The notes beneath the pieces were generated by a model, which was not told the origin of the DNA, did not search any database, and saw only the letters and a program-made list of their open reading frames with translations. A program made the position numbers and the translations under genes. Below are positions 3,146 through 25,870 of a DNA stretch of 64,000 nt, in pieces. Location: IMG/VR virus record IMGVR_UViG_3300028394_002328, positions 124,001 to 188,000 of that record. One strand, written 5' to 3'. Every line of letters begins with the position of its first letter. Positions within the stretch are counted from its first letter, which is position 1.

Positions 3146-3153
3146 GATAAATA
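3146..3153 (+). promoter_or_regulatory. T4-like late promoter core
   Basis: GATAAATA upstream of SD AGGAG and the tail tube ATG at 3175. Confidence 0.7.
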
Positions 3154-3174
3154 ATATTAACAGGAGAAATTAAA

Positions 3175-3807: not shown

Positions 3808-3817
3808 GAGGTAACGC

Positions 3818-4777: not shown

Positions 4778-4789
4778 GAAAGGTATAAT

Positions 4790-5420: not shown

Positions 5421-5421
5421 T

Positions 5422-5859: not shown

Positions 5860-5860
5860 C

Positions 5861-5866
5861 TAAATA
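5861..5866 (+). promoter_or_regulatory. Late promoter core, 5 nt before ATG
   Basis: TAAATA-ATATT-ATG(5872), no SD. Confidence 0.6.
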
Positions 5867-5871
5867 ATATT

Positions 5872-6354
5872 ATGACCAAACGTTTAGAAGAATTATTTGA
5901 ACTGCCACAAGAAGAGATTGAATCTCTGTCTAAACCTATTCCTGAAAATGCAATAGAAGTTACTAAAGAAGCGTTAACTAATTTAGAAAAAATAGAAAAT
6001 GCTTTACCTCAAGTAAGAGGATTAGAAGTTGCTGATATTGAAATGGACAGTCTAGCTGATTTAGCTACTAATAGTTATAAAGACCTTATGGACTTAGGTA
6101 TGCAAGTAGATAGCAGATTTAGCAGTGAAATATTTAGCGTAGCTAGTAACATGTTAAATCATGCCATTACTGCTAAGACAGCTAAAATTAATAAGAAACT
6201 TAAAATGATAGAATTACAATTAAAGAAAGCTGCATTAGACCACAAAACCAATCCTGCCGTAGAAGAAATAGCAAATACTCCATTAGGTGAAGGTAAGGCT
6301 CTTGATAGAAATGAGTTGTTAAAAATTCTAGCAGCTAAAAAGAATGATGAATGA
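5872..6354 (+). CDS. Helical protein, possible small terminase subunit (gp16-like)
   Basis: Two-helix pattern SYKDLMDLG..SRFSSEIFSVASNMLNHAITAK..KMIELQLKK resembles gp16-type helices; position next to gp4. Assignment is tentative. Confidence 0.45.
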   Translation: MTKRLEELFELPQEEIESLSKPIPENAIEVTKEALTNLEKIENALPQVRGLEVADIEMDSLADLATNSYKDLMDLGMQVDSRFSSEIFSVASNMLNHAITAKTAKINKKLKMIELQLKKAALDHKTNPAVEEIANTPLGEGKALDRNELLKILAAKKNDE

Positions 6355-6365
6355 TAAATACTAGA
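6353..6365 (+). promoter_or_regulatory. Late promoter, extended GATAAATACTAGA copy 1
   Basis: Exact 13-mer also at 9484 and 27092. Confidence 0.7.
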
Positions 6366-6379
6366 TACGGGAACATGCA

Positions 6380-7006
6380 ATGAAAAGCCTTAAAAAATAT
6401 ATTACTGAAAGTGTGCATACATATAACTGCACGATTAAAATTGCAGGTGATGTTGATAAAAACTTCTTAGATTTATTCAAGTACAATCTAAGTAAGTTTG
6501 ATCCTATCGATATCAGTGCTCCTACAACCACGCCTATTCAAAAAGATCCATATGGTTTTCCTAATTTAAGCAATCAATCTGTAACTATTATCAAATGTAA
6601 ATTTAGATATCCAGCTACAGAACCAATGGTTCAACAAATAGCACAGTTGTGTGGATATAATGTTGATATGGTTCGTTTAGTTAATACTGATTATAACGAC
6701 AGTATTAATACAGAATCAGATGAGTATGCTAACCAAATGAAAGAAAGCCCATTATTGACTAAAAACGAAATGGGTTCAGCACCAGGCAGTAAAGAGGCTA
6801 GCAAAGCATATGGCGAGTCATATTTGACAAGCATTAAAGATCAAATGAAGGATAATGAAATTGATATTCCTTATTCAGGACAAAAAACTCAACCAGCATT
6901 TGATCCATTCAAAGTTATACCTCAAGATCCTAGGGGCGACAATAGCCCAATGAGTAAGATTACTAGACCAAATAAACCAGCGACTGGCGCTAAGTTCAAT
7001 AGATAA
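6380..7006 (+). CDS. Putative internal head protein with T4-like capsid-targeting N-terminus
   Basis: N-terminus MKSLKKYITE aligns with T4 CTS MKTYQEFIAE; late promoter upstream. Confidence 0.6.
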   Translation: MKSLKKYITESVHTYNCTIKIAGDVDKNFLDLFKYNLSKFDPIDISAPTTTPIQKDPYGFPNLSNQSVTIIKCKFRYPATEPMVQQIAQLCGYNVDMVRLVNTDYNDSINTESDEYANQMKESPLLTKNEMGSAPGSKEASKAYGESYLTSIKDQMKDNEIDIPYSGQKTQPAFDPFKVIPQDPRGDNSPMSKITRPNKPATGAKFNR

Positions 7007-7017
7007 GGAACACAAAA

Positions 7018-9414
7018 ATGGACATGAAAGATTTATTATCAAAAATGGCTCAGCTTAATGAGGCTAAAGAAGCAAGCTATTCACCATCATACCGTGTAGG
7101 TAAGACTGGTGATTTTAGTGATAAGCCTAATATGAAAAGAGGCACACCAGTTGCTGGTAAAATAGGTAAGTATGGAAAAACATCAGATGAGTTAGGTGAT
7201 CCTGATCAAGATCCTGATGATGATACCTCTTCTAGCGCAGAGAAGCGTGGTCGTGGTCGTCCCAAGAAAGCAGGTGGAGAAGCATATACTAAAGATAGAT
7301 ACTCTGGTGCAAAAGACCTACAAAGTGTTATGATTGGTAAAATGCCTAAATCATTACCAGGTAAAAAAGGTACAGTACATAAATCTCCTCAAGATAAAGA
7401 AGAAGGCGCTACTAAAAAGAAAAGTTTAAAAGATTGGGTTGAAAGAGTAGAAAGCGTATTAGCAGAAAATACTGCTACCACAACATCAACTGCTACTGCA
7501 CCTAGTCCTTCACAGAAAGTAATGGTAAAGCCAGGCCAGCCTGCTGGACAAAAGCCTCCTGCAACAATGACTACACAAACAGGTCAAACTATTGCTGTAG
7601 GTTCAGCAGACCAAGTTAAAAAATTAGGTGATTTAGTTAACACAGGGCAAGTACAATTAACAAAGCCTGGTACAACTCAGCCACTAGATGAAGAAGATAT
7701 GGAAGAAGGTAATGAAAAGTGGATCAAAGGCGCTATCAAGCATCCAGGTGCTTTCACTAAAAAAGCAAAATCACATGGAATGAGTACATCTTCATTTGCT
7801 AGTAAAGTATTATCTAATAAAGAAGATTATCCTGCTAGTACTGAAAAGCAAGCAAATCTTGCAAAAACTTTAGGTAAGTTCCGTAAAAAAACTGACGAGG
7901 CTGATATTCCTCCAAATGACAGTTTAATGAGTCCTATTAGCGAAGCAAAGAAAAAAGCCGATGCAGCAGCAAAGAAAGATGATAAGGCTGAAAAAGCAGG
8001 CAAGAAAGTAGCTAAAGATATTGAGTATGATGAAAAAGTAAAAGATAGCATACATGGTAAAAAGCGCAGTGCTGAGGATAATAAAGCAGAACGTGCGGGT
8101 AAAAAAGTTGCTAAGGACATTGAATACGATATGAAAAAGAAAACAGTTAAAGAAGCCGCTAAGCCAGATTTCCCTGATATTGACAATGACGGCAATACAA
8201 AAGAATCTATGAAAAAGGCTGCAGCCGACAAGAAAAAGAAGGCTGTTAAAGAAGGTAGAGACCATCACTTAAAAGCAGCCTATCATGAAGGTAAGGCACA
8301 TGGTTTAAGCAAACAAGCATATAACTGTCGCCATGATGATATGGAAGAAGCAAGACAGTATCATGAAGGTTACAAGTGTGGTCTTGATGAGTGCTATGGT
8401 CAACAACCTATTTTAGGTTATGTCGGTGAAGAATCACAACATGATGTAGTTGACACAATGGCTAGTTACGGTGCTCATGGATTAGAAGAAGATGATATGA
8501 TGGAAGTTGGTCGTGGTGAATACATGAAGCAACAAGCCCGTAAGCCAGGCGATACATTCAAAGCGTTTGGTCAAACTTTCAAAGATAGCGATGTACTAGA
8601 TGAATTTGCTTTTGAATCATGGGATAAGCAATTAACTGCTATCTTAGAAGGTAAAGAAGTAAATGAAGGTATGACTGTTTCTATCTCTAAAGGTCATCAA
8701 GGTTCCCCTGATTCAGTAAGCGTATCAGCACAAGATGGCGAAGCCGACCAGTTGTTAGGCTTAATCAAATCAGCAGGCTTAGGTTTGTTTGGTGGAGATG
8801 AAAGCAAAGGGTTCGCACCCGGTGAAGAAACTCCTAGAACAGCACCAGGTGGTATTGAAGTAGTTGATGATCATGATGGTATGATGGCATTAATGAAAAA
8901 ATTAACTGGCGGTGACACGTCAGGTAGTGATGGAGATTACGAAGAAGAACAAGGTCATACCGATCACGACCATGGAGATCATGAAGAAGAGTGTAATGAG
9001 TGTGGTTACATGGAAAGCGATTGCCAGTGTGATGACAAAGAAATGGTTGATGAAGTAGAATCAGAAGACCAAATGACTTACAATGTAGCAGAAGATAATC
9101 CTCCTGATTCAGGCGCAGCAGAAACAACTGCTGATGAAAATGCTGAAGCAGCGGAAGATCAGGCAATTGCAACAGACGATGAATTTCAAAATGTCAATGA
9201 ATGGGCTAATCAAGTTGGTGGAGGTCCAGGCAAAGGGACAGATGCAGGATTTGAGCAAGATATTGCGTTTATGACTAAAGTTATTTCAGGTGGCTTGAAT
9301 AAGCAAAAATCAACTGGTCAGACAACTATCCCAGTGATTGCTCATCAGGGGCAGCGTACTGGTGTTAATGAAAATTTTGTGGCTGATTGGAAGAAATTAG
9401 CAGGAATAAAGTAA
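7018..9414 (+). CDS. Large charged low-complexity protein, putative prohead core/internal protein
   Basis: 798 aa, Lys/Glu/Asp-rich, many [LIVM]-x-E motifs, AT-hook KRGRGRPKK, DxDxDG motif, His/Cys cluster, ends DWKKLAGIK. Confidence 0.65.
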   Translation: MDMKDLLSKMAQLNEAKEASYSPSYRVGKTGDFSDKPNMKRGTPVAGKIGKYGKTSDELGDPDQDPDDDTSSSAEKRGRGRPKKAGGEAYTKDRYSGAKDLQSVMIGKMPKSLPGKKGTVHKSPQDKEEGATKKKSLKDWVERVESVLAENTATTTSTATAPSPSQKVMVKPGQPAGQKPPATMTTQTGQTIAVGSADQVKKLGDLVNTGQVQLTKPGTTQPLDEEDMEEGNEKWIKGAIKHPGAFTKKAKSHGMSTSSFASKVLSNKEDYPASTEKQANLAKTLGKFRKKTDEADIPPNDSLMSPISEAKKKADAAAKKDDKAEKAGKKVAKDIEYDEKVKDSIHGKKRSAEDNKAERAGKKVAKDIEYDMKKKTVKEAAKPDFPDIDNDGNTKESMKKAAADKKKKAVKEGRDHHLKAAYHEGKAHGLSKQAYNCRHDDMEEARQYHEGYKCGLDECYGQQPILGYVGEESQHDVVDTMASYGAHGLEEDDMMEVGRGEYMKQQARKPGDTFKAFGQTFKDSDVLDEFAFESWDKQLTAILEGKEVNEGMTVSISKGHQGSPDSVSVSAQDGEADQLLGLIKSAGLGLFGGDESKGFAPGEETPRTAPGGIEVVDDHDGMMALMKKLTGGDTSGSDGDYEEEQGHTDHDHGDHEEECNECGYMESDCQCDDKEMVDEVESEDQMTYNVAEDNPPDSGAAETTADENAEAAEDQAIATDDEFQNVNEWANQVGGGPGKGTDAGFEQDIAFMTKVISGGLNKQKSTGQTTIPVIAHQGQRTGVNENFVADWKKLAGIK

Positions 9415-9428
9415 AAGCAACTGATAAG

Positions 9429-9457
9429 AAATACCCAGCTTAGCTGGGTATTTTTTT
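9429..9457 (+). terminator. Rho-independent terminator
   Basis: AAATACCCAGC-TTA-GCTGGGTATTT followed by a T-run. Confidence 0.9.
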
Positions 9458-9483
9458 GGCTATGGCGTTCTTTATCTCAAAAC

Positions 9484-9496
9484 GATAAATACTAGA
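9484..9496 (+). promoter_or_regulatory. Late promoter, extended GATAAATACTAGA copy 2
   Basis: Between the terminator and the ATG at 9516. Confidence 0.75.
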
Positions 9497-9515
9497 ATAA
9501 AGAGGTAATGATAGG

Positions 9516-12500
9516 ATGAGCCAGCAGAATATAGACTTTGGTACGTTTCCTGACGATCCGGATGCGGATGCGATAAGAACGGCCTTTCAAAAAGTACAAG
9601 AAAACTTTACAGAAATTTATTCAGGCCTACAAGGCGCAGCGGTTTCATCAATCAATAGGACTCCTGGAGCTGGTATAACAGTAAGTAGTCCAACTGGTAA
9701 TGTTATCGTTACTGCTAACATTGCCTGCGTTCAAGTTCACACAAGCACACTAAGCATAGGTCGTGATGCTAATGGTAGTCAAGATACCTCTATTACTTCT
9801 AGCTCTCAGACTCTATGGGTTGACCTACCTACTACTATTTCTAACGTTACTAATATTATATTATCTGGTAATGCTTCAATAGGTGGAAATTTATTAGTAA
9901 ATGGTTTTTCTAATTTAGCTAATATTATAGCCACTGGATATGCTAACATAGGTAGTAATCTTACGGTCACTGGAAATATATCTTCAAATGCAATCTCTGC
10001 AACGGGTAATATTAGCACAACTGCTAATCTTAGTGGAGCAAACATTAGCAGTACAGGGACATTGACAGTATCCGGTAACGTTAATTTTACTGGCACAAGT
10101 AATGTTACATTAGGTAGTACATCTAACATACACATGTCTGGTGGAACTAGCGGATATATATTACAGACTGATGGTTCAGGAAATTTATCTTGGATTAATC
10201 CAAGTTCAGCAGTTGGGTCGGGAACATCAGGTACAAGTGGATATACAGGTATAAGTGGTTATAGTGGTATCAGCGGGTACACAGGAGTTTCAGGATATAC
10301 CGGTGTTAGTGGTGTTTCAGGTACATCGGGATATTCAGGTGTTTCAGGTACAAGCGGATACAGTGGATATACTGGTTATTCAGGTGCAGTAGGAACATCA
10401 GGAACTAGTGGATACACCGGAACATCAGGTACAAGTGGATATACCGGTGTTTCAGGATATACTGGAACGTCAGGCTTTACAGGAATCAGTGGATACTCAG
10501 GCACTTCAGGATATACTGGAACATCGGGTACATCGGGTACATCAGGTACTAGTGGATACTCAGGTACAAGTGGTACATCAGGTACATCAGGTACGAGTGG
10601 ATACACCGGTACATCAGGTACATCAGGTACGAGTGGATATACCGGTACATCAGGATATTCAGGTACTAGCGGTATTAGTGGTTACACGGGGGCAAGCGGT
10701 ACATCAGGCATCAGTGGATATACAGGTACTTCAGGAACTTCGGGATACTCAGGAACTTCGGGCTATTCAGGAACAAGTGGTATAAGTGGACATTCAGGCA
10801 TCAGTGGTTACACGGGGGCAAGCGGTACATCAGGCATCAGTGGATATACAGGTACTTCAGGATATACTGGAACGTCAGGCTATACAGGTGTCAGTGGATA
10901 CTCAGGCACAAGTGGTATATCAGGTTATACAGGAGATAGTGGTACATCGGGGATATCTGGTTATACTGGCACATCAGGTACTTCAGGGATATCTGGTTAT
11001 ACTGGTGCAATCGGTACATCAGGGTATACTGGTATCAGTGGTTACACCGGGGTCAGTGGTTATACTGGGGTCAGTGGTTACACAGGAACATCAGGTATAT
11101 CAGGTTATACAGGAGCTAGTGGTACATCGGGGATATCTGGTTATACTGGCACATCAGGTACTTCAGGGATATCTGGTTATACTGGTGCAAGCGGTACATC
11201 TGGGCATTCTGGGGTCAGTGGTTATACCGGCGTAAGTGGTTATACTGGGGTCAGTGGTTACACAGGAACATCAGGTATATCAGGTTATACAGGAGCTAGT
11301 GGTACATCGGGGATATCAGGATATACTGGTGCATCTGGACATTCTGGTATATCAGGTTATACCGGTGCTAGTGGCACATCGGGTATATCAGGGTATACTG
11401 GTATCAGTGGTTACACCGGGGTCAGTGGTTATACTGGGGTCAGTGGTTATACTGGAACATCAGGTATATCAGGTTATACAGGAGCTAGTGGTACATCGGG
11501 TACTAGTGGATATTCTGGTATTAGTGGTTATTCAGGGACAAGCGGTACATCAGGTGCAAGTGGTATTTCGGGTTATACTGGAACATCAGGTATATCAGGA
11601 TACACCGGAGCAAGTGGTACATCGGGAATATCAGGATATACTGGAACAAGTGGTACATCGGGATATTCAGGAACTTCTGGATATTCAGGAACTTCCGGGG
11701 CAAGTGGCACATCAGGGATTAGTGGTTATACAGGAGCTAGTGGTACATCGGGTATCAGTGGTTATACTGGTGTTTCAGGTTATACTGGTGTTTCAGGCTA
11801 CACAGGAACTTCCGGGGCAAGTGGCACATCAGGGATTAGTGGTTATACTGGAACAAGTGGTACATCAGGGATTAGTGGTTATACTGGAACAAGTGGTACA
11901 TCGGGTATCAGTGGTTATACTGGAACAAGTGGTACATCAGGGATTAGTGGATATACTGGTGTCAGTGGATACACCGGTACAAGCGGAACATCTGGTATAA
12001 GTGGTTATTCAGGTTCAGGCATCAGCGGCTACTCAGGTACAAGTGGCACATCAGGTACAAGCGGTACGACAGGAATTAGTGGATATACCGGTGTCAGCGG
12101 ATATACTGGAGTAAGTGGCACATCTGGTATAAGTGGTTATACGGGAGATAGTGGTACATCAGGTATCAGTGGCTACTCAGGAACAAGTGGTACATCAGGT
12201 ATCAGTGGATATACCGGTACTAGTGGTACATCAGGTATCAGTGGCTACTCAGGAACAAGTGGTACATCAGGTATTAGTGGATACACCGGTATTAGTGGAT
12301 ACACCGGTATTAGTGGTACATCAGGTGTCAGTGGTTATACTGGCGTAAGTGGATACACAGGCGTAAGTGGATACACAGGCGTAAGTGGATATTCAGGATC
12401 AGGCGTAAGTGGCTACTCAGGTACATCAGGTATCAGTGGTACATCAGGTAGAAGCGGATACTCAGGTCAATCAGTCGCTATTCAAGGTTCAGTTGCGAAC

Positions 12501-15500
12501 TCTACTTTATTACCATCTGGTCAACCTGCAGGATATTTATATATCGTTCTAGCTGCTGGTGGTGGATATAATGCAGGTGATGGTGCATTAAGTAATGGCG
12601 ATAACACATATACCAATATTGGACCACTTCAAGGTCCATCAGGATTCTCAGGTGTAAGTGGTTATTCAGGATCAGGTATAAGTGGTTATACTGGTACAAG
12701 CGGATATACTGGTACATCAGGAACAAGTGGTTACACTGGAACAAGTGGTACATCAGGTATCAGTGGATATTCAGGTAGTAGCGGGTATTATGGTCAAGAC
12801 GGAACAAGTGGATATTCAGGAACAAGTGGCTACTCAGGTACTTCAGGAGTAAGTGGGTATACTGGTACATCAGGTACAAGCGGATATACTGGTGCTAGTG
12901 GTACCTCAGGTACAAGCGGATATACTGGTACAAGCGGATATACTGGTACAAGCGGATATACTGGTACATCAGGAACAAGTGGTTATACAGGCACTTCAGG
13001 AATAAGTGGAACATCAGGAATAAGCGGTACATCAGGCATAAGCGGGTACACTGGTACAAGTGGTACATCAGGTATCAGTGGTACATCAGGTATCAGTGGA
13101 TACTCAGGATCAGGTATTAGTGGTTATTCGGGTACAAGTGGTTACACAGGTACTTCAGGCATAAGTGGTTACACAGGTACTTCAGGCATAAGCGGCACAT
13201 CAGGCATAAGTGGATATACTGGAACAAGCGGCTACTCAGGTACTTCAGGCATAAGTGGAACATCAGGCATAAGTGGAACATCAGGCATAAGTGGTTATAC
13301 TGGTGTTAGTGGTTATTCAGGTACATCAGGAATAAGTGGTTATACAGGTGTAAGTGGAGAATCTGGTATAAGCGGATATAGTGGTACTTCAGGTATAAGC
13401 GGTACATCGGGTATCAGTGGATATACAGGAGTAAGTGGATATTCAGGTGCATCGGGCGCATCAGGTACTAGCGGATACACTGGTACAAGTGGTACAAGTG
13501 GTACAAGTGGATATACAGGAGTAAGTGGATACAGTGGTACATCAGGTTTAAGCGGTTATAGTAGTTCTAGCGGTGTTAGTGGATACAGCGGTGCCTCAGG
13601 TACTAGTGGTAAACAAGGTACATCAAGTAGTTACTTCAATTATCTTGCTGATACTAGTACACAAAGTGCGCCTCCTGCAACTGGGGATATTATTTGGAAC
13701 AATAGTACACAAACTAGTGCTACTCAGATATATGTAAACCATGTTACTTCAGATGGAGTAGATATTGAGATATTCTTAGCATTACTAAGTCAAACAGAAT
13801 TAATTACTTTACAAGATGCTGCCGAAAGTAATAATTATCAAATATTTGAAATCAATGGTACTCCTACAAATAATACAACTTATTGGACACTTCCAGTAGT
13901 ATCAACAGGTTCGGGAGGAACAGGTTCTACTAATTTTGGTAATAATTTACCTCTAATCTTAGCATTAACTAATGGTGTTAGTGGATTCTCGGGAGCATCA
14001 GGTAGCAGTGGTTATTCAGGAACTTCAGGGTATACTGGTGTAAGTGGATACACAGGTGTCAGTGGATATACTGGTACATCGGGTATAAGTGGATACACAG
14101 GGGTAAGTGGTTATACTGGTGTTAGTGGCTACTCAGGTACATCAGGTATAAGCGGTACATCAGGTATAAGCGGTACATCAGGTATAAGCGGTACATCAGG
14201 TATAAGTGGTGCATCAGGTATAAGTGGCTATACTGGAACAAGTGGATATACTGGTACATCAGGTATTAGTGGTTACACTGGAACATCAGGTATAAGCGGA
14301 ACATCAGGTATAAGTGGATACACTGGAACAAGTGGATACTCAGGCACATCAGGTACTAGTGGCACATCGGGTATAAGCGGTACTTCAGGAATAAGCGGCT
14401 ACTCAGGATCAGGTATTAGTGGATATACTGGTACATCAGGTATAAGTGGATACACTGGTGTTAGTGGATATACAGGTGTAAGTGGATACTCAGGTACATC
14501 AGGAATAAGTGGTTACACTGGTACAAGTGGCACATCAGGTATCAGTGGTACATCAGGTATCAGTGGTACATCAGGTATCAGTGGATACTCAGGATCAGGT
14601 ATAAGCGGATATACTGGTACATCAGGGATAAGTGGTTACACTGGTGTTAGTGGTTACACTGGTGTTAGTGGATATACAGGGGTAAGTGGATACACTGGTG
14701 TTTCAGGTGTAAGTGGTTACACTGGTACAAGTGGTACATCTGGTATCAGTGGATACACCGGCACATCAGGGAGAAGTGGATACTCAGGTACTTCAGGCAT
14801 AAGTGGATACACAGGTATATCAGGATATACAGGCGTAAGTGGTACATCAGGTATCAGTGGATATACTGGGGTCAGTGGGTACACCGGAATAAGTGGATAC
14901 ACAGGTGTCAGTGGATACTCAGGTAATGCAGGTGTAAGCGGATACTCAGGATCAGGTGTAAGTGGATATTCTGGTACATCAGGATACAGCGGTGTTGCAG
15001 GTACGTCAACATCACTCAACGCAACAAATGATACAACAACTAACCCATTATACCCAGTAATGGTTGCCGCTGCAGGAAGCACTCAAACAGTAAAAGTAAG
15101 TACTAGTGGTCTAGCGTTTAATGCTAGTAGTAATGTTCTCACTGTTGGTAGCGGTACAGGTGGTAATATTACTGGTTCTAACGTAATAAGTGCTAACACC
15201 TTTATCGGTACCCTTGCTAATGGTAATAGTAACGTTTATATTGCTACAGCAAACGGTAACGTGACAATAGCAGCGGTTGGTAATACTACATTGACAATTA
15301 CTGGTACTGGTGCAAATATCAGCGGTACAGCAAATATTTCAGGTAATGCTAACGTTGGTAATATTGGAACTGCTCAAGTACTTGCTTCAGCAAACGTTAC
15401 TTCACCTCAACTAATATCAAACATAGCAACCGGTACTGCGCCGTTAGTAGTAACAAGTACAACTCGTGTTTCTAATCTTAGTGTTGCTTATGCTAACGTT

Positions 15501-17378
15501 TCGGACTATAGTACTATTACTACAGCATCTACAGGTAACTATTATGTTAACTTTACTAATGCATTAACAGGTAACGTACAAATGAACGCTAACGCTGCGT
15601 TCGTTGCAAACACAAGTAATGGTGCATTATACGCAACTACATTTGTTGGTAATCTATATGGTATTTTAGCCAACGGTAATAGTAATGTCAACATTGCAAC
15701 TGCAAACGGCAATGTCACAATAGCGGCTGTTGGTAATACTACATTGACAATTACTGGTACTGGAGCAAATATTAGTGGTACAGCAAATATTTCAGGTAAT
15801 GCTAACACTGGTAACTTAGGTACAACAACATTAATTGCTACAACAGGTAATATTACTACAGTTAATGGTAACATAGCAAACGCTTCTACTATCATTGCTA
15901 ATGCAGCAAACGGAACTGTATTTGCAAATAACTATACAGCATCAGGTGCTGCTACAGGTAATGCCAATGTATCAACTATAACAGGTAATTTGGGTATTCG
16001 TGCAATATTCTCTACCTATACAGATAATTCAGCAGCAGCCAGTGCTACTATCGCTAATGCAGCAATACACGCAATAGCAGCACCAAACTTAGCAGCAGCA
16101 AATGCTACTGTTACATTTACTAACGCAGCAACGTTTTATATTGCAGGTGCGCCAGTTGCTAATACAAATGCTACAATTACTAATCCATATTCATTATTTG
16201 TAGCAGCAGGTAATAGTTATCTTGCAGGTAACGTTACTTTTGCAGGTAACTTAATCGGTATTCATGCAAATGGTAATAGTAACGTCAATATACCTGCCGC
16301 TAATGGAAACGTTAATATAAGTGCAGCAGGTAATGCTAATGTGTTCGTTGTAACCGGCACTGGTGCTAATATCACCGGTACAGCAAATATTTCAGGTAAT
16401 GCTAACGTAGGTAGCTTAGGCTTTGGTAGTGGTGTAATTACTGGTACCGGCAACATTACTGGTGGTAACTTAATTGGTATTATCGCTGCTGGGTCAAATA
16501 CAATTACTACTACTGGTAATATTACTGGTGGTAACTTGATTGGTATTCACGCAAACGGTAATAGTAATGTTAATATACCTGCTGCTAACGGAAACGTTAA
16601 TATAAGTGCGGTTGGTAATGCTAATGTGCTAGTTGTAACTGGAACTGGTGCAAACATCACTGGTACTGCTAACATCACTGGTAATACTAACGTTGGTAAT
16701 ATTACAGTAGGCTCTGGAACCGGTGGTAATATTACTGGAGCAAACTTAGTAAGTGCTAATTATTTTACTGGTACATTTATTAATGGTAACAGCAACATAT
16801 CTATTGTAGCAAATGCCAATATTAATTTATCAGCAGTTGGTAATGCTAATGTGTTCGTTGTAACCGGCACTGGTGCTAATATCACCGGTACAGCAAATAT
16901 TTCAGGTAATGCGAACGTCGGTAACTTAGGCTTTGGTAGTGGGGTAATTACTGGTACAGGTAATATAACTGGCGGTAATTTAATTGGTATCGTGGCTGCT
17001 GGTAGTAATACTATTAGTACTACTGGTAATATATCAGCAGGTAATGTAACAGTAACATCATATCACATACGTTCAGTTGGTACTGCAATATCAGCAGCAG
17101 GTTCTACTCAAGGTACTGCTACAGCATTGACTAAAGAGATGAACATTGTTTCTACTGTTCTATCTGGCAATGGTGTAGTATTACCAACAGCAGTAGCTGG
17201 TATGGTATTAACTATTACTAATAGTAGTGCAAACAGTTTATTAGTATACCCTGCAACTGGGGCAGCAATTAATGCACTAGCAGCCAATGCAGGATTGACG
17301 CAAGTTGCGAACGCAACAATACAATTTATTGCACCAACTACAACTCAGTGGTATACAGTAGGCGCTACATACGCATAA
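9516..17378 (+). CDS. Giant fibre protein: gp9/gp10-like N-terminal anchor, Gly-X-Ser/Thr repeat, Asn/Gly-rich shaft
   Basis: N-terminus QNIDFGTFPDDPDADAIRTAFQKVQENFTEIY matches the T4 gp9/gp10 N-terminal pattern (IxxG...DG.GD.LR.AF.K.N.NF.E.Y); three Gly-X-Y blocks; C-terminal GNI/NGNSNV fibre repeats. Confidence 0.85.
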   Translation: MSQQNIDFGTFPDDPDADAIRTAFQKVQENFTEIYSGLQGAAVSSINRTPGAGITVSSPTGNVIVTANIACVQVHTSTLSIGRDANGSQDTSITSSSQTLWVDLPTTISNVTNIILSGNASIGGNLLVNGFSNLANIIATGYANIGSNLTVTGNISSNAISATGNISTTANLSGANISSTGTLTVSGNVNFTGTSNVTLGSTSNIHMSGGTSGYILQTDGSGNLSWINPSSAVGSGTSGTSGYTGISGYSGISGYTGVSGYTGVSGVSGTSGYSGVSGTSGYSGYTGYSGAVGTSGTSGYTGTSGTSGYTGVSGYTGTSGFTGISGYSGTSGYTGTSGTSGTSGTSGYSGTSGTSGTSGTSGYTGTSGTSGTSGYTGTSGYSGTSGISGYTGASGTSGISGYTGTSGTSGYSGTSGYSGTSGISGHSGISGYTGASGTSGISGYTGTSGYTGTSGYTGVSGYSGTSGISGYTGDSGTSGISGYTGTSGTSGISGYTGAIGTSGYTGISGYTGVSGYTGVSGYTGTSGISGYTGASGTSGISGYTGTSGTSGISGYTGASGTSGHSGVSGYTGVSGYTGVSGYTGTSGISGYTGASGTSGISGYTGASGHSGISGYTGASGTSGISGYTGISGYTGVSGYTGVSGYTGTSGISGYTGASGTSGTSGYSGISGYSGTSGTSGASGISGYTGTSGISGYTGASGTSGISGYTGTSGTSGYSGTSGYSGTSGASGTSGISGYTGASGTSGISGYTGVSGYTGVSGYTGTSGASGTSGISGYTGTSGTSGISGYTGTSGTSGISGYTGTSGTSGISGYTGVSGYTGTSGTSGISGYSGSGISGYSGTSGTSGTSGTTGISGYTGVSGYTGVSGTSGISGYTGDSGTSGISGYSGTSGTSGISGYTGTSGTSGISGYSGTSGTSGISGYTGISGYTGISGTSGVSGYTGVSGYTGVSGYTGVSGYSGSGVSGYSGTSGISGTSGRSGYSGQSVAIQGSVANSTLLPSGQPAGYLYIVLAAGGGYNAGDGALSNGDNTYTNIGPLQGPSGFSGVSGYSGSGISGYTGTSGYTGTSGTSGYTGTSGTSGISGYSGSSGYYGQDGTSGYSGTSGYSGTSGVSGYTGTSGTSGYTGASGTSGTSGYTGTSGYTGTSGYTGTSGTSGYTGTSGISGTSGISGTSGISGYTGTSGTSGISGTSGISGYSGSGISGYSGTSGYTGTSGISGYTGTSGISGTSGISGYTGTSGYSGTSGISGTSGISGTSGISGYTGVSGYSGTSGISGYTGVSGESGISGYSGTSGISGTSGISGYTGVSGYSGASGASGTSGYTGTSGTSGTSGYTGVSGYSGTSGLSGYSSSSGVSGYSGASGTSGKQGTSSSYFNYLADTSTQSAPPATGDIIWNNSTQTSATQIYVNHVTSDGVDIEIFLALLSQTELITLQDAAESNNYQIFEINGTPTNNTTYWTLPVVSTGSGGTGSTNFGNNLPLILALTNGVSGFSGASGSSGYSGTSGYTGVSGYTGVSGYTGTSGISGYTGVSGYTGVSGYSGTSGISGTSGISGTSGISGTSGISGASGISGYTGTSGYTGTSGISGYTGTSGISGTSGISGYTGTSGYSGTSGTSGTSGISGTSGISGYSGSGISGYTGTSGISGYTGVSGYTGVSGYSGTSGISGYTGTSGTSGISGTSGISGTSGISGYSGSGISGYTGTSGISGYTGVSGYTGVSGYTGVSGYTGVSGVSGYTGTSGTSGISGYTGTSGRSGYSGTSGISGYTGISGYTGVSGTSGISGYTGVSGYTGISGYTGVSGYSGNAGVSGYSGSGVSGYSGTSGYSGVAGTSTSLNATNDTTTNPLYPVMVAAAGSTQTVKVSTSGLAFNASSNVLTVGSGTGGNITGSNVISANTFIGTLANGNSNVYIATANGNVTIAAVGNTTLTITGTGANISGTANISGNANVGNIGTAQVLASANVTSPQLISNIATGTAPLVVTSTTRVSNLSVAYANVSDYSTITTASTGNYYVNFTNALTGNVQMNANAAFVANTSNGALYATTFVGNLYGILANGNSNVNIATANGNVTIAAVGNTTLTITGTGANISGTANISGNANTGNLGTTTLIATTGNITTVNGNIANASTIIANAANGTVFANNYTASGAATGNANVSTITGNLGIRAIFSTYTDNSAAASATIANAAIHAIAAPNLAAANATVTFTNAATFYIAGAPVANTNATITNPYSLFVAAGNSYLAGNVTFAGNLIGIHANGNSNVNIPAANGNVNISAAGNANVFVVTGTGANITGTANISGNANVGSLGFGSGVITGTGNITGGNLIGIIAAGSNTITTTGNITGGNLIGIHANGNSNVNIPAANGNVNISAVGNANVLVVTGTGANITGTANITGNTNVGNITVGSGTGGNITGANLVSANYFTGTFINGNSNISIVANANINLSAVGNANVFVVTGTGANITGTANISGNANVGNLGFGSGVITGTGNITGGNLIGIVAAGSNTISTTGNISAGNVTVTSYHIRSVGTAISAAGSTQGTATALTKEMNIVSTVLSGNGVVLPTAVAGMVLTITNSSANSLLVYPATGAAINALAANAGLTQVANATIQFIAPTTTQWYTVGATYA
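10221..15008 (+). repeat. 9-bp-period Gly-X-(Ser/Thr) coding repeat in three blocks (10221-12473, 12633-13625, 13974-15008)
   Basis: Triplets GTS, GYT, GYS, GIS, GVS, GAS; about 751+331+345 aa by coordinate count. Confidence 0.95.
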
Positions 17379-17387
17379 GGAAATATT

Positions 17388-18008
17388 ATGATAACATTAG
17401 ATATATTAAGAGCAATTTGTCCAAAAACAAAACCTGCAATTTTAGAAAATTACGTTGAACCGATTAACACAGTGGGTCAATATTATGAAATGTTTGACAA
17501 CCCAAAAAGAATAGCAGGGTTTTTAGCACAAGTAGCACACGAATCAGGTGGGTTTACTGCTATAAAAGAAAATTTAAATTATAGTGCTAAAGGGTTGATG
17601 ACTACTTTCAAAAAATACTTCCCCGATGAAGCTACTGCAAAGCAATACGAGAAGAAACCAGAAAAGATTGCTAATCGTGTATATGCTAACAGAATGAAAA
17701 ATGGTTCTGAAGAATCAGGTGATGGATATCGTTTTTGTGGGCGTGGATTAATACAGTTAACAGGAAGAGATAATTATACTAAGTTTGCACAGGCACTGGA
17801 CATGAGTATTGATGATACAGTAGCCTATTTAGAAACTCCAAACGGCGCATTAGTTAGTGCAGCATGGTTTTGGGATAATAATAAATTAAATCAATATTGC
17901 GACCGTGATGATTTTGTTACATTGACTAAAAGAATTAATGGCGGAACTATTGGATTGGAAGATAGAAAGCATCATTATCAAATTGCATTGAATTTGCTTC
18001 AAGGGTAA
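17388..18008 (+). CDS. Glycoside hydrolase family 19 (chitinase/lysozyme-like) lysin
   Basis: AGFLAQVAHESGGF, ENLNYS, GDGYRFCGRGLIQLTGRDNY, SAAWFW, TKRINGG.GLEDR. Confidence 0.93.
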   Translation: MITLDILRAICPKTKPAILENYVEPINTVGQYYEMFDNPKRIAGFLAQVAHESGGFTAIKENLNYSAKGLMTTFKKYFPDEATAKQYEKKPEKIANRVYANRMKNGSEESGDGYRFCGRGLIQLTGRDNYTKFAQALDMSIDDTVAYLETPNGALVSAAWFWDNNKLNQYCDRDDFVTLTKRINGGTIGLEDRKHHYQIALNLLQG

Positions 18009-18009
18009 A

Positions 18010-20529
18010 ATGGCACAACCAATTTGGACTACACCAGCAGGAACTTTAGGAACTTTCCCATCGGGAATTTCTACTATTACGCAATTAATAGCCACACCAG
18101 TGGCTCCTGCCACCAGTGTAACTTATACATTACTAAGTGCTATTTTACCGGCAGGATTATCAATTGATATCCTAGGAACAATCTACGGTACACCTTCATT
18201 AGTAACACAAGAAACTACATCAACTTTTACTATAAGAGCCACTGATAATTTAGGAAACATAAGAGATAGAACATTTTCAATGACTATCTCTGGCACTGCA
18301 ATACCATCTTTTGTCACCCCATCTGGTAGTATTTTAACGTCAAACGACAGTGTGTGGATAGAACTTCAAATTGAATATGCTAATCCTGATTCAGAGAATC
18401 CTGTAACTATTTCATTGATAGAGGGAGCGCTGCCCGTAGGACTAGAAATTAATCAAACTGGATTAATAAGAGGATATGCTGAACCACCTACAGCGTCAGT
18501 GACATTACCTGAAGTTGTTACAGCGGCAACTGTAACAGAAACTACTAATATAATTACATGTTTAACTACAACAGGATTCGCTCTTGGTAGACCAGTCGTG
18601 TTTACCGGGGCCTCGGTATTTGGTGGTTTAGAAGCAGGTATTACTTATTATATTAAAAGTATCATAGATAGTACTACTTTTACAATAAGTACTACTCAAA
18701 ACGGTCCTACATTAGCGCTTGCTAGTGGTACAGGATTTATGACAGTTACATTGCCTACACTTTCAATTGGACAACCAACTATTAGGTCATATGTTTTTAC
18801 ATTAACATTAAACAGTCCATTAGGAGGAGATTCAGGGTCATATAGTATGACTATCATAAATCAGAATACTCCCATAAGTCAAGGTGGTCCAGGCTTTCCT
18901 GCAAATAGCAGAACACCTACAATATATAATACTAGACCACAATCATTTAACATAACTGATGCTGATCCATATTATGGATATTATGTATTACCGCCGATAG
19001 ATAGTGGATATAATGATACATATCCCCCAAGTTCACTGGCATTTATTGGAACTATCCAAAGTGATAATTATTTTGCATTTAAGATAATTGGACATGATTT
19101 TGATGGCAATGGTATTACTTATGTATACTCAGAGTTACCATCTGCACTTACCGGTGACAGTGCAACAGGTTGGATAACAGGTACTCCTTCGATATCAACT
19201 GAAGGTATTAACCAATTTAATTTTGGTGTTGCTGTTTATAAAACAGCCAACCCAACAATACAAACACCCTTTTTTAACTTCTCATTTAATTTAGCAAATG
19301 CAATAACAGGTGTTATTACATGGGTTACTCCTAGTAATTTAGGAACTATTTTTAATGGTACTGTAAGTACAAAAGGTGTATCAGCGACAGCAGATGTTGC
19401 ATTACAATTTAGGGTTATAGACGGGGAATTGCCCCCGAATTTAACACTTTTGTCTAATGGACAAATAACTGGGTATGTAGCAGATCAACCTACCGCTAAT
19501 TTATTAGAACAAGGTGATAACACAGTATTTACCTTTACAATACAAGCATACTCACCAATTTATCCTATAGTATTTTCTAATAGAACCTTTACATTAACTG
19601 TATTGCAAGAATTTAGTCAACCTACTGATACATTGTACATAAAAGCTACTCCTAGTATACAAGATAGAGTTATGATTGATTCTTTATTGAATGATGATAC
19701 ACTAATACCTTATGATTTATTATATCGTCCCAATGACATTTATTTTGGTAAAGCATCTAGTGTAATTTACGAACACGCATATGGTATATATGCTAGTGAT
19801 GTAGCTGAGTACATTGCGGCTGTAACTAGAAATCATTATTGGAGGAACATTACATTAGGCGAATTAAAAACTGCCATTGCAAGAGATGAGAATGGTAATA
19901 TAATTTATGAAGTAGTGTATAGTCAAGTTATAGATAATTTAGTTAACCCTAAGGGTGTTAGTGTGGCAAGTTCAATATATTGGCCAGTATTAATTGATTT
20001 AGGTCAAGGTCCATGGTATACTAGTGTAACAAATGTGTTTACCAGCTATGAAGATATATTAGGACAACTGTACTATACCAGCTTAACTCCAGGATACGCC
20101 CGTACATTATATCCAAATAGTTTATATAATATGCGTAACCGAGTAGCACAAGTATTGGGGCAAGAATATGATAGTAGATTGTTACCATTATGGATGACTA
20201 GTCAACAAATAGATGGTAGTACATTGGGGTATACTCAAGCTTGGGTAATATGTTATACTCAACCGGGTGGTGCAGAAATTATAAAAAATAATATTAATAA
20301 TAATTGGACACAGGCTGATGGTTTGCCATATACATTAAATATGATTAATTTTAGAATTGATAGATTTAGTGTAGACAAGAGTATGACATATAACTATGAT
20401 AATAGGTTAGTACCGCCCACGTGGACTGGTTTACCTAGTGGAACACCTGTTCCCGATCCTGTTGATAGTAAAGATTTTTATGTACTATTCCCCCGTCAAA
20501 CAATTTTACCTGACGAATCTCAGTACTAA
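18010..20529 (+). CDS. Virion structural protein with putative-Ig (He_PIG-like) repeats, probable baseplate component
   Basis: Repeated W.TP.G.LG..LP.GL.I...G.I.GTP...FTIRATD units; small beta module (TGFALGRPVVF..TYYIKS..TTFTIS) shared with the next gene. Confidence 0.7.
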   Translation: MAQPIWTTPAGTLGTFPSGISTITQLIATPVAPATSVTYTLLSAILPAGLSIDILGTIYGTPSLVTQETTSTFTIRATDNLGNIRDRTFSMTISGTAIPSFVTPSGSILTSNDSVWIELQIEYANPDSENPVTISLIEGALPVGLEINQTGLIRGYAEPPTASVTLPEVVTAATVTETTNIITCLTTTGFALGRPVVFTGASVFGGLEAGITYYIKSIIDSTTFTISTTQNGPTLALASGTGFMTVTLPTLSIGQPTIRSYVFTLTLNSPLGGDSGSYSMTIINQNTPISQGGPGFPANSRTPTIYNTRPQSFNITDADPYYGYYVLPPIDSGYNDTYPPSSLAFIGTIQSDNYFAFKIIGHDFDGNGITYVYSELPSALTGDSATGWITGTPSISTEGINQFNFGVAVYKTANPTIQTPFFNFSFNLANAITGVITWVTPSNLGTIFNGTVSTKGVSATADVALQFRVIDGELPPNLTLLSNGQITGYVADQPTANLLEQGDNTVFTFTIQAYSPIYPIVFSNRTFTLTVLQEFSQPTDTLYIKATPSIQDRVMIDSLLNDDTLIPYDLLYRPNDIYFGKASSVIYEHAYGIYASDVAEYIAAVTRNHYWRNITLGELKTAIARDENGNIIYEVVYSQVIDNLVNPKGVSVASSIYWPVLIDLGQGPWYTSVTNVFTSYEDILGQLYYTSLTPGYARTLYPNSLYNMRNRVAQVLGQEYDSRLLPLWMTSQQIDGSTLGYTQAWVICYTQPGGAEIIKNNINNNWTQADGLPYTLNMINFRIDRFSVDKSMTYNYDNRLVPPTWTGLPSGTPVPDPVDSKDFYVLFPRQTILPDESQY

Positions 20530-22657: not shown

Positions 22658-22686
22658 TTGATATTTACCTTAAGAGGTGTTACAAT
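22658..22686 (+). promoter_or_regulatory. Sigma70-type promoter for the dnaE fragment
   Basis: TTGATA-N17-TACAAT with extended TG; ATG 5 nt downstream at 22692. Confidence 0.7.
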
Positions 22687-22691
22687 CAGTT

Positions 22692-23198
22692 ATGAAAACA
22701 GATTTGTACGGGCAGCAAATTTACACAGAAAGTGATATCTGTGAAATATATTTGAGGGACCCTGTACGAAAACTAAAACAAGTTTTGGTAGAAAAACCCA
22801 TACAGTTTTCAGATATATTAGATTTGTCTGATGTACCACATACTACAGTCTATTCCGATCCTAAATTAACTATTGAAGAATTTGACAATAGGTTACAAAA
22901 TAATTGGTTAATGCCCGAAGAGTATAAGAATTTTGACATTGCCAAATATGTATTAGACTTGTGTAAAAACGATGAAGAACTACAAAGAGTTGGTGAAGAA
23001 TTAATATTATTCCAAGAACGGGAAATGTTTGATTTGTTACGCTATCTCAAGTATTTTGTAGATACTATGAGAGCAAATAATATAGTATGGGGCGTGGGTA
23101 GAGGTAGTAGTGTAGCCAGTTTTGTACTATTTTTGTTAGGAGTTCACCGTATTAATTCATTATATTATGATTTATCAATTGATGAATTCTTAAAATAA
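22692..23198 (+). CDS. dnaE (fragment): DNA polymerase III alpha (DnaE) fragment, stand-alone palm/thumb piece
   Basis: RVGEELILF..LRYLKYFVDTMRANNIVWGVGRGSSVASFVLFLLGVHRINSLYYDLSIDEFLK corresponds to DnaE GPGRGS..GSLVAYAL.IT..DP..DLLFERFL. The ATG at 22692 is preferred because the track start at 22677 lies inside the promoter. Confidence 0.85.
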   Translation: MKTDLYGQQIYTESDICEIYLRDPVRKLKQVLVEKPIQFSDILDLSDVPHTTVYSDPKLTIEEFDNRLQNNWLMPEEYKNFDIAKYVLDLCKNDEELQRVGEELILFQEREMFDLLRYLKYFVDTMRANNIVWGVGRGSSVASFVLFLLGVHRINSLYYDLSIDEFLK

Positions 23199-23222: not shown

Positions 23223-23645
23223 ATGAAATATAAAACAGCAATGGGAAAAGTAGTAGACATGGGAGCATTGGCTGCTAAAAACGAAAAGGCAAGAGCAGTT
23301 GGTAATATGAAAGTTAATGCTCGCGGTGACACAATTGATTCTACTGGAAAGGTAATCAAAAGCGCTACTAATAGAGTTAACGAAAACTATGCAAAAACTG
23401 TAGGTAACCGTTCAGCCAATGTAGTTAGAAAACCATCTCAGCCCATTGAAAGAAACAAGGTCAAACCTGACGTAGTTAAAGAAGAATTAACCACATTTGA
23501 AAAAGAACTTGAGGCTGAGTTTGAAGATGATTTAGAAGTTGAAGAAATTAAGGCTTTAGAAGTCAAAGAAAGTAAAGTGGAAGTTAAAGAAATTAAATCA
23601 AAGGAGATTAATAGTAAAAATGGCAATACAACCACACAAGATTAA
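23223..23645 (+). CDS. Hypothetical protein (basic N-terminus, acidic C-terminus)
   Basis: Strong SD AGGAG; G..VDM.AL..KNE..RAVGNM.VNARGD motif. Confidence 0.75.
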   Translation: MKYKTAMGKVVDMGALAAKNEKARAVGNMKVNARGDTIDSTGKVIKSATNRVNENYAKTVGNRSANVVRKPSQPIERNKVKPDVVKEELTTFEKELEAEFEDDLEVEEIKALEVKESKVEVKEIKSKEINSKNGNTTTQD

Positions 23646-24269: not shown

Positions 24270-24947
24270 ATGTTTTATACCCCTAGAGTTTATCCAGACG
24301 CTACTACAATCAATACAGCAATGGCTGGTGTTTATAAGAACATGAGTCTTGCTGTTTTGGTCAGTATGCTTGTTAGTTATTTTGTTGGTACATCACCCCA
24401 ATTACTAGCATTTTTCTTTACTGGTGTAATGAAATGGATCGTGATGTTTTCACCTCTCATTGCTATTTTTGCGATTACTTTTGTACTATCTCGTAGCCCA
24501 TCTAGGGAAGTAGCATTTCTTATGCTATATGGATTTGCCGCCCTTATGGGACTAAGTTTTGCTACCATTTTTGCTGTGTTTCAAATGGGTAGTATCATTA
24601 CTGCATTTATGGGTGCGGCAGTACTATTTGGTGTTATGAGTTTTTATGGATATTTCACGAAGACAAACCTTGATAGTATGGGTCAGTTTATGTTTGTTGG
24701 CCTTATTGCTATTATCATTGCCAGTATCATTAATATTTTTATTGGTAGTACTGTATTTCAAATGGTAATCTCAGCACTTGCTATCATCATCTTTTTGAGT
24801 TTGACTGCGTATGATACCCAAAAGATTAGAGAAATGCTGTTTTATGATGAAACTGGGACAGCAGAAGTCACGGGAGCCTTGACTTTATACCTAGATTTCA
24901 TTAATATCTTCTTGTCGTTACTTCAATTATTTGGTGAGAAAAAATGA
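24270..24947 (+). CDS. yccA: BAX inhibitor-1/YccA (TMBIM) family membrane protein
   Basis: About 7 hydrophobic segments; VY..M, AF..AA..F..MS.YG..TK..L, LTAYDTQKI, GALTLYLDFINIFLSLLQL. Confidence 0.92.
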   Translation: MFYTPRVYPDATTINTAMAGVYKNMSLAVLVSMLVSYFVGTSPQLLAFFFTGVMKWIVMFSPLIAIFAITFVLSRSPSREVAFLMLYGFAALMGLSFATIFAVFQMGSIITAFMGAAVLFGVMSFYGYFTKTNLDSMGQFMFVGLIAIIIASIINIFIGSTVFQMVISALAIIIFLSLTAYDTQKIREMLFYDETGTAEVTGALTLYLDFINIFLSLLQLFGEKK

Positions 24948-25870
24948 AAAATAGGCTTTGGGTTGAGAAATTTCGTCCCACAAATGTAGATGAATATGTG
25001 TTTACTGATGACCGACTGAAAAGTCAGGTCAAGCAATGGATTAGTGAAGGATCTATTCCCCATCTTTTATTAAGTGGGGATCCAGGTACAGGTAAGACTA
25101 CACTTGCTAAGGTTCTTATTAAAGAACTAGGTGTGGAAGAGTATGATGTACTAGAAATCAATGCCAGCCGTGAAAATGGTATTGATAATATGCGTGAAAA
25201 AATCAATGGCTTTGTTCAAACAATGCCTTTTGGTAAATTCAAAATCGTTCTACTAGATGAGGCTGATTATCTAACTCAGCCAAGTCAGGCAGCATTGCGC
25301 GGTGATATGGAAACATATCATATGACTGTTAGGTATATCTTAACTTGTAACTATGAGCATAAGATTATCCCTGCATTGCGTAATAGCAGGTGTCATAAGA
25401 TTCATATCGCAAAACCTGATATGAATGAGTTTACTGCTAGGGCCGCAACTGTTCTTGTTACTGAGGGCGTAGAGTTTGACTTAGATACACTAGATAACTA
25501 TATTCGTGGAACTTATCCTGATCTTAGGCGTTGTCTAAACCAACTTCAAGTAAACAGTAATACAGGTAAACTCATTTCTAATGTAGATACTAATTCAAGT
25601 GAAGATTCTATTCTAGTTGAAGCCGCACAATTGTTTAAAAGTGGTAAAATTATAGAAGGTCGTCAACAACTGCTACATTATATTGCGTTGTATCCAACAC
25701 GCATTGAAGATACATATAAATGGATGTACGACAATCTTGACCTTTGGGGCACAACTAATGAACGGCGTGATGCTAATATTATAATCATTCGCAATGGTCT
25801 TGCCAATCTACCATTGGTAGGTATTCCTGAAATTTCATTAGCAGCAACTTTGGCAGAATTGTCATTATGA
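24944..25870 (+). CDS. gp44: Sliding clamp loader AAA+ subunit (T4 gp44/RFC-small-like)
   Basis: LWVEKFRP, PHLLLSGDPGTGKTT, EINASRENG, KIVLLDEADYLT..QAALR, ILTCNY, PDLRR. Confidence 0.95.
   Translation: MKNRLWVEKFRPTNVDEYVFTDDRLKSQVKQWISEGSIPHLLLSGDPGTGKTTLAKVLIKELGVEEYDVLEINASRENGIDNMREKINGFVQTMPFGKFKIVLLDEADYLTQPSQAALRGDMETYHMTVRYILTCNYEHKIIPALRNSRCHKIHIAKPDMNEFTARAATVLVTEGVEFDLDTLDNYIRGTYPDLRRCLNQLQVNSNTGKLISNVDTNSSEDSILVEAAQLFKSGKIIEGRQQLLHYIALYPTRIEDTYKWMYDNLDLWGTTNERRDANIIIIRNGLANLPLVGIPEISLAATLAELSL

Follow-up and report, generated by a model that had tools for sequence, protein, structure and literature searches.

A predicted split minimal C-family DNA polymerase in an uncultured jumbo phage: the stand-alone N-terminal piece and its distant partner

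The N piece, its promoter and its neighbours

The DNA analysed in this study, called the window (a stretch of 64,000 nucleotides at its full length), is part of an 88,116-bp IMG/VR viral record. Because this record is rated 26% complete, the window is regarded as a fragment of the genome of an uncultured jumbo phage. The locus under study carries the following features.

22658-22686, + strand: sigma70-type promoter with an extended -10 (TTGATA, 17 nt, TG-n-TACAAT), 10/12 matches
22692-23198, + strand: N piece gene, assigned as the N-terminal unit of a split minimal Pol III alpha (PHROG 11127), 168 aa
22692-22904, + strand: N piece residues 1-71, family-specific N-terminal region, three short strands and helices in the model
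22905-23195, + strand: N piece residues 72-168, first half of the C-family palm, ending in the loop before the DxD strand
23091-23111, + strand: GS (nucleotide-binding) motif of the Pol-beta-like nucleotidyltransferase fold, G134-V-G136-R137-G138-S139-S140
23223-23645, + strand: small downstream gene, PHROG 14844, function unassigned, 140 aa
23620-23973, + strand: GroES/Cpn10 co-chaperonin gene (PF00166, E 4.4e-8)
24944-25870, + strand: gp44/RFC-like clamp-loader ATPase gene (phrog_168, E 1e-69), 1,746 bp downstream of the N piece

The N piece gene runs from the ATG at 22692 to the TAA at 23196-23198, and an in-frame GTG at 22677 is an alternative start that would give 173 aa. The deduced protein was matched to the C-family polymerases by several profile comparisons. 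In Pfam, PF07733 (DNA_pol3_alpha) was the sole match, with residues 93-167 on profile positions 20-94 of 260 (E 4e-9), and no Hint/intein family was detected on this protein. The PHROG profile phrog_11127, annotated as 'DNA polymerase', matched the N piece end-to-end on its 171 positions (E 3e-40). The family profile of the N piece matched residues 381-454 of Taq Pol III alpha in hmmsearch, and hhalign paired N piece residues 124-168 with E. coli DnaE 349-393. From this pairing, the C-terminus of the N piece corresponds to N393 of E. coli DnaE (...FERFLN393), eight residues short of the catalytic D401/D403. The last residues, EFLK, are directly followed by the stop, and a continuation is absent in every frame; the downstream frames hold the unrelated 140-aa ORF or stops. 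The stop codon comes eight residues before the position of the DxD, and the DxD is located on a separate protein, so that the N piece does not have the one-chain palm of canonical DnaE/PolC.

The AF2 model of the N piece alone had a pLDDT of 77.9, with about 72-91 for residues 1-71 and less than 50 for the GRGS strand-loop. An exhaustive VIA-align structure search with this model gave PolC or DnaE structures as the top seven matches (Z 4.4-7.2, rmsd 3.0-3.3 A, 88-94 residues aligned). These include PolC 9qpc (Z 7.2, rmsd 3.1 A, 88 aligned), M. tuberculosis DnaE1 5lew (Z 7.0), E. coli alpha 5m1s, in which positions 279-393 were superimposed on N piece residues 72-168 (Z 6.0, rmsd 3.1 A, 93 aligned), and Taq 2hpi (Z 4.5). 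The best match outside the C family was an unrelated structure with a Z of 3.0. The structure matches were limited to residues 72-168, and no DnaE counterpart was detected for residues 1-71. A Foldseek search of the same model against the PDB gave nothing at E <= 0.001.

The N piece is a conserved gene under purifying selection, not a relic, as judged from its sequence in many phages. At least 7,989 protein clusters were found by a word search, and almost all of the 120 clusters among the matches listed are exactly 168 aa long. In 80 IMG/VR loci, the length was 168 aa in 67 and 169 aa in 10. The dN/dS value (median of pairwise Nei-Gojobori estimates for pairs with a dS of 0.05-1.5) was 0.16 for the whole protein; the N-terminal part is less constrained (0.34, residues 1-90) than the remainder (0.09, residues 91-168). 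The GxGRGSS motif was invariant in 41 sequences, including the PA5oct-like, SCTP-2, Rak2-like and Vibrio phage versions. Even at only 32-42% identity, the versions of the PA5oct-like phage MIJ3, Salicola phage SCTP-2, Salmonella phage 7t3 and Vibrio phage 2.275.O have the same EF[FL]K at, or no more than three residues from, their C-terminus.

The -10 element of the promoter ends 5 nt before the ATG, and therefore a leaderless or near-leaderless transcript is predicted. The 13 promoter sites in the region against 12.4 expected are not above chance on the window sequence alone. Among 53 distinct upstream sequences of orthologues, a promoter with at least 9/12 matches was present in 45, and its -10 ended 5-6 nt before the ATG in 41, as compared with 9 of 1,060 shuffles. 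The hexamers were kept in the orthologues and the spacer sequence was variable. A Shine-Dalgarno-like motif at a working distance was found in none of the 53 distinct upstream sequences. These observations suggest that transcription from a host-sigma70 promoter begins with the A of the ATG or beside it, so that the mRNA would be leaderless. The ATG-abutting promoter is specific to a metagenomic clade of at least 62% identity; in the distant cultured phages it is absent, and the upstream genes overlap or abut the N gene. We found no earlier report of this promoter abutting the ATG. AAGAGG at 22674-22679 was considered as a ribosome-binding site and discarded, because this unconserved hexamer belongs to the promoter spacer and its distance from the ATG is 13-18 nt.

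The small gene downstream of the N piece is found at the same position in all relatives examined. A chaperonin/GroES gene is annotated at the position of the co-chaperonin gene in MIJ3, the Vibrio phage and Phosso, and an unannotated gene of similar size lies there in SCTP-2 and 7t3. The order of N piece, small gene and, further downstream, clamp loader was observed in all five cultured phages inspected (MIJ3, the Vibrio phage, SCTP-2, Phosso and 7t3). In the preliminary description of this DNA, the ORF had been read as a stand-alone 168-aa DnaE piece that contains the GRGS region and ends before the catalytic aspartates, with a clean stop, no intein and no continuation, under its own sigma70-type promoter and 1.7 kb upstream of a clamp loader. 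The results above bear out this reading in each point that could be checked, the promoter being recognised by its conserved position in the orthologues.

Several other features of the window were observed. The GroES/Cpn10 ORF overlaps the preceding 140-aa ORF by 26 nt. Between it and the clamp loader lies a gene for a full-length Bax inhibitor-1/YccA-type membrane protein (PF01027, E 6.5e-50; 24270-24947, + strand), whose stop overlaps the clamp-loader start and which is unusual in a phage replication cluster. Two giant proteins with collagen triple-helix repeats (PF01391), presumably fibres, are encoded at 9516-17378 (+ strand; 2,620 aa, E 8.6e-182) and 52765-57792 (+ strand; 1,675 aa, E 2.3e-97). 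Parts of the window at 10-17 kb recur with 67-84% nucleotide identity in the longer contig G001 described below, at 112, 159-161, 168-169, 177-181 and 260-265 kb among other places. A glycoside hydrolase family 19 protein (chitinase class I-like; PF00182, E 7e-6), probably an endolysin or a virion-associated lysin, is encoded among the tail-fibre genes at 17388-18008 (+ strand).

The complementary C piece and its co-occurrence with the N piece

The complementary half of the palm was not found in the window's own 88-kb record, and an HMM of the C piece gave nothing at E <= 10 on the six-frame translation of the window. It was found in G001, a 335,035-bp IMG/VR contig that is rated 95% complete and comes from the same phage; the two assemblies are 100% identical over the 26.5 kb compared (6.5 kb around the N gene and window positions 1-20000). 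A search for an ORF starting near (M)PDIDxD had been proposed in the preliminary description, and the ORF found in G001 at 101,081-101,701 has 206 aa and starts with MKIESDVDIDF. The N gene is located at 146,692-147,195 of G001, and the C gene lies 45.6 kb upstream on the same strand. The C piece is missing from the 88-kb record because this record would end near position 105,800 of G001, about 4 kb short of the gene. Its presence in the phage of the window is thus taken from the second assembly, identical wherever the two were compared.

A search with the phage DnaE family phrog_405 located the C piece in the complete relatives; each of them has it as another short ORF, with a length of about 200 aa. 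The partner ORFs in MIJ3, Vibrio 2.275.O, SCTP-2 and Salmonella 7t3 start with M..TD[VI]DID[VI], and therefore the catalytic DxD is placed at the extreme N-terminus. In the C piece from G001, five residues stand ahead of the DxD. This protein matched phrog_11778, annotated as 'DNA polymerase', with an E of 3e-56, and the DnaE-like PHROGs weakly. Four DnaE motifs were recognised by an alignment made by eye, and the order in E. coli DnaE is kept, as follows.

E. coli DnaE PDFDVDFCMEKRDQVIEHV; C piece SDVDIDFGDREKILQHI
E. coli DnaE VKFDFLGL (third Asp, D555); C piece FKLDLLNV
E. coli DnaE LRRAMGKK; C piece LIRPAKK
E. coli DnaE GYGFNKSHSAAYA; C piece GYVFKRSHSCAYA (supported by hhalign, E 1e-3)

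The hhalign match placed C piece residues 152-179 on DnaE 739-768 with an E of 1e-3 and a probability of only 20%. DnaE was absent from an hmmsearch of the C-piece profile against the PDB sequences, which returned chance matches only, and Pfam gave nothing on the C piece, including no Hint/intein. The homology of the C piece to DnaE is weak at the profile level, and is drawn from the motifs, the weak PHROG matches, the context and the co-fold. The distance from the DxD to the third aspartate is 63 residues in the C piece (D8-D71), as compared with 152 in E. coli (D403-D555), which leaves no room for the thumb. Twelve residues were invariant in 27 C pieces: D6, D8, D10, K69, D71, R139, P140, K142, F167, K168, H171 and Y175. 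The dN/dS value of the C piece (Nei-Gojobori) was 0.12. The AF2 model of the C piece alone, from a shallow alignment, had a pLDDT of 52.8, with residues 1-72 mostly below 50; such a poor fold is expected because the protein is half a domain.

The promoter type described for the N gene was found in 1 of 49 upstream sequences of the C gene. Directly upstream of the C gene, at about 100.4-101.1 kb of G001, lies a gene for a PhyH-type Fe(II)/2-oxoglutarate dioxygenase (PF05721, E 1.9e-8). Its stop and the start of the C gene overlap as ATGA, and therefore translational coupling is suggested. No match to this dioxygenase gene was found in the relative G003.

The distribution of the two pieces was compared in GenBank and IMG/VR. 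By tblastn on GenBank phages, 100 records gave a match to the N piece and 96 to the C piece, the breakdown by organism name being near-identical, and in some records (Phosso and PAC2) both pieces are already labelled DnaE-like. Among 16 long IMG/VR records, 12 contained both, and in each of these C preceded N by 40-49 kb on the same strand. In the other four (three with only C and one, G003, with only N), the expected position of the missing piece lies beyond the contig end. G003 (348.7 kb, rated 100% complete) was considered as a genome with the N piece only and was rejected as such, its expected C site, about 44 kb upstream of N, falling past the end of the contig. The two pieces co-occur in all informative genomes, according to these searches. 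The neighbourhoods inspected, in 160 IMG/VR loci and eight cultured-phage records, contained no fused or adjacent N and C; the search for homologous proteins of the N piece covered those of 92-294 aa, a range that fused proteins elsewhere would exceed. Across phages, the distance between the two genes varies from 11 to 116 kb. The pair is also present in Alishewanella phage Slicko01 (OQ508956.1), where N lies upstream of C, the reversed order, at a distance of 11 kb, and the C gene is near the clamp loader and primase/helicase genes. The genome of this phage is 141 kb, well under the 200-kb jumbo threshold, and thus the pair occurs also outside jumbo phages.

The family-B polymerase is intact in G001-G003, with frames of 914-917 aa (917 aa in the phage of the window). 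No PHP domain was found in six related genomes, and no second PF07733 match in G001 and two complete relatives, each genome having one; the cultured complete relatives also have only one PF07733 match each. A full-length dnaE that would make the N piece a relic is therefore excluded in G001 and the two relatives. The finger domain PF17657 gave no match in four of five records (G000, MIJ3, Vibrio 2.275.O and SCTP-2), and the weak match in the fifth, 7t3 (E 0.019), lies inside its C piece. Two side observations were made on these genomes. In MIJ3 (LR588166.1), the family-B polymerase matches at 124.9-128.7 kb fall in two separate frames of 825 and 379 aa, and the main replicase may also be split or interrupted in this lineage. 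In Vibrio phage 2.275.O (MG592671.1), positions 123058-123147 on the - strand, which lie inside a 618-aa frame, matched PF07733 weakly as a second site (E 0.06; the GS-loop region, profile positions 49-78); this may be a chance match or another Pol-beta-fold protein.

Predicted assembly of the two pieces and their possible function

The N piece of the window and the C piece of G001 were co-folded, and the ipSAE was 0.90 (0.91, 0.90 and 0.90 in the runs), whereas the best of three controls gave 0.00. Of 80 solved complexes, 58 attain the mark of this co-fold, and of 110 mismatched pairs, 2 do so. The contacts agreed by at least 94% between the runs, and the pLDDT of the partner was at least 87. 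Custom alignments were used, and eight sequences from GenBank phage records were left out. The contacts of lowest error include those of W133-G134 of N, in the strand before GRGS, with residues 9-11 of C, in the DID strand. Such pairing of the GS strand with the DxD strand is expected in a palm of the Pol-beta-like nucleotidyltransferases. N residues 3-31 and 61-74 also lie within the predicted interface. The co-fold supports the binding of N and C without showing it, and the score may reflect a memory of single-chain DnaE structures. Homology to DnaE, the position of the split, a partner that exists and co-occurs, purifying selection and conserved catalytic residues were shown here; with the model, physical assembly of the two proteins is likely.

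In our view, N and C probably combine into a single composite active site. The N piece would supply the first half of the palm, namely its helices, the first beta-strand and the GRGS nucleotide-binding loop. The C piece would contribute the following strand, which lies at its start and bears the metal-binding D-x-D-x-D, together with the third aspartate (K-L-D-L-L) and the reduced finger motifs (IRPAKK and FKRSHSxAYA). The two chains would associate non-covalently, without intein or splicing, and complete a single beta-sheet and a single active site. The assembled enzyme would have about 374 residues, without the thumb, PHP, clamp-binding and OB domains, and would work beside the intact family-B replicase of the phage. 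In the freshwater clade, the N gene appears to be under its own host-type early promoter abutting the ATG. The activity most likely to be expected is template-directed nucleotide addition in an accessory role in replication or repair; templated DNA polymerase activity of the pair is plausible. Processive synthesis is doubtful, because the thumb and a recognisable clamp-binding motif are absent. The preliminary description had raised a C-family polymerase assembled in trans without splicing, and this view gains support from the partner ORF, the co-occurrence, the purifying selection and the co-fold. Of the further checks it had named, co-folding separated the pair from every control, and dN/dS gave no sign of relaxed selection on the fragment; the near-complete phage genomes contain a complementary ORF and no full-length dnaE.

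A more far-reaching and rather doubtful proposal is that the pair is the smallest known active C-family DNA polymerase (about 374 residues), accessory to the family-B replicase and made partly from a leaderless early sigma70 mRNA. Bacillus subtilis DnaE extends primers and then hands off to PolC. By analogy, the accessory role of the mini polymerase might be, for example, primer extension before hand-off, and this suggestion is as tentative as the joint proposal to which it belongs.

The enzyme formed by N and C could be a nucleotidyltransferase of another kind. In that case the chains would assemble into an enzyme of the Pol-beta fold that is no templated DNA polymerase and has another substrate or product, for example in non-templated tailing, primer-like synthesis, or nucleotide signalling or modification. 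The missing thumb, with 63 residues between D8 and D71 against 152 in E. coli, the lack of PHP, finger-Pfam and clamp-binding domains, and the intact PolB that already serves as the replicase would all suit such an enzyme. We regard it as unlikely, however, since the DnaE finger motifs (LRRAMGKK-like and FNKSHSAAYA-like) are retained and invariant, and these motifs mark C-family polymerases and not generic nucleotidyltransferases. The gene neighbourhood also speaks against it, as the N gene and the clamp loader share a conserved neighbourhood of replication genes, and the C gene of the Alishewanella phage is near the clamp loader and primase/helicase genes.

It was also proposed in the preliminary description that the N fragment is a decoy or modulator of the host replisome. 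According to this proposal, the N piece alone would bind the host or phage replisome, and its link with C would reflect shared ancestry only. The separate promoter of the N gene, the family-specific residues 1-71 and the ability of the N piece to fold alone with moderate confidence (pLDDT 77.9, AF2) could be read in this way, but the strongest constraint falls on the catalytic GRGS strand-loop, which has a pLDDT below 50 when alone, the co-occurrence with the C piece is strict, and the predicted interface pairs the GRGS strand with the DxD strand. The decoy proposal has thus found no support, and we consider it very improbable. Least credible of all is that the N piece is a pseudogene left by the decay of a captured dnaE, or that it is joined to its partner via a split intein or recoding. 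Its size (about a tenth of DnaE) and its end immediately ahead of the catalytic residues could be read in this way. The pseudogene is already refuted by the selection and conservation data (dN/dS of 0.16 and, for the palm part, 0.09; a length of 168 aa that recurs in thousands of clusters and in 67 of 80 loci; an identical end point in phages at 32-42% identity), and against joining stand the lack of a Hint/intein domain, the five residues before the DxD of the C piece and the 11-116 kb between the genes.

Relation to known split and single-chain polymerases

C-family polymerases are the bacterial replicases, and for long they were known solely as large single chains. The two-chain mini version described here is conserved and, with at least 7,989 protein clusters, abundant in metagenomes; its break parts the nucleotide-binding loop of the active site from the metal-binding aspartates. 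If it is active, it would define the minimal catalytic core of the C-family polymerases and bear on the origin of the family, and it would raise the question of why phages with a family-B replicase keep a second, bacterial-type polymerase. If the pair proves to be the smallest polymerase of this family, it would offer an experimental model of a minimal or ancestral Pol III core and a natural scaffold for a two-piece polymerase. A test is feasible, as cultured relatives exist (PA5oct, Rak2 and 121Q).

A split minimal Pol III alpha has been predicted in the group 2.2 jumbo phages by Iyer, Anantharaman, Krishnan, Burroughs & Aravind 2021 (Viruses 13:63, PMC7824862), and the arrangement is therefore already known as a computational prediction. 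In their description, it accompanies a family-B polymerase, and a role in one-strand synthesis or repair was proposed (PMC7824862). No experimental work (biochemistry or expression) on any member was found in the searchable literature. The system of the window resembles theirs (PMC7824862) in the stand-alone N unit with the nucleotide-binding GS motif, in the distant C unit with the Mg2+-binding aspartates and the template-binding part, in the family-B polymerase alongside with no other Pol III domains, and in the same relatives, i.e., the Rak2-like phages, PA5oct, Atu_ph07 and SCTP-2. There is no difference in kind, and the phage of the window is an uncultured member. The N unit of about 170 aa ending before the DxD, the separate C unit and the PolB without other Pol III domains were all found here; the two units may make one active enzyme, and the observations on this point are the co-fold model (ipSAE 0.90) and the conserved catalytic residues. 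This analysis adds the break point (E. coli N393 / about P400), the selection values and the controlled co-fold, as well as the near-constant spacing of 40-49 kb in the clade, the promoter abutting the ATG and the presence of the pair in a 141-kb non-jumbo phage.

The pair shares with bacterial DnaE and PolC (E. coli alpha, Taq 2hpi, M. tuberculosis DnaE1 5lew and G. kaustophilus PolC 3f2b) the Pol-beta-like palm, the GS loop, the DxD, the third aspartate and the LRRAMGKK-like and FNKSHSAAYA-like finger motifs. It differs from them in consisting of two chains instead of one, with about 374 residues against about 1,160. The phage version is without the PHP, thumb, beta-clamp-binding, HhH and OB domains, and its N piece has an extra N-terminal region of 71 residues.

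The cyanobacterial split-intein DnaE (DnaE-n and DnaE-c) is likewise a C-family polymerase made from two distant genes. The cyanobacterial halves carry intein halves and are ligated to one chain, and their break lies far downstream of the palm. In contrast, the phage break splits the palm itself, with the GS loop on one side and the DxD on the other; no intein sequence stands on either piece, and therefore the pieces must stay two chains.

The multi-subunit RNA polymerases of phiKZ-like phages have been experimentally characterised. In these jumbo phages, the core RNA polymerase is encoded in separate polypeptides that assemble non-covalently (PMC7824862). The system described here is similar in that a core nucleic-acid polymerase of a large phage is divided between separate polypeptides, their assembly being predicted here by the model, and it differs in the unrelated fold, which is the double-psi beta-barrel in the phiKZ-like enzymes, and in the phage group.
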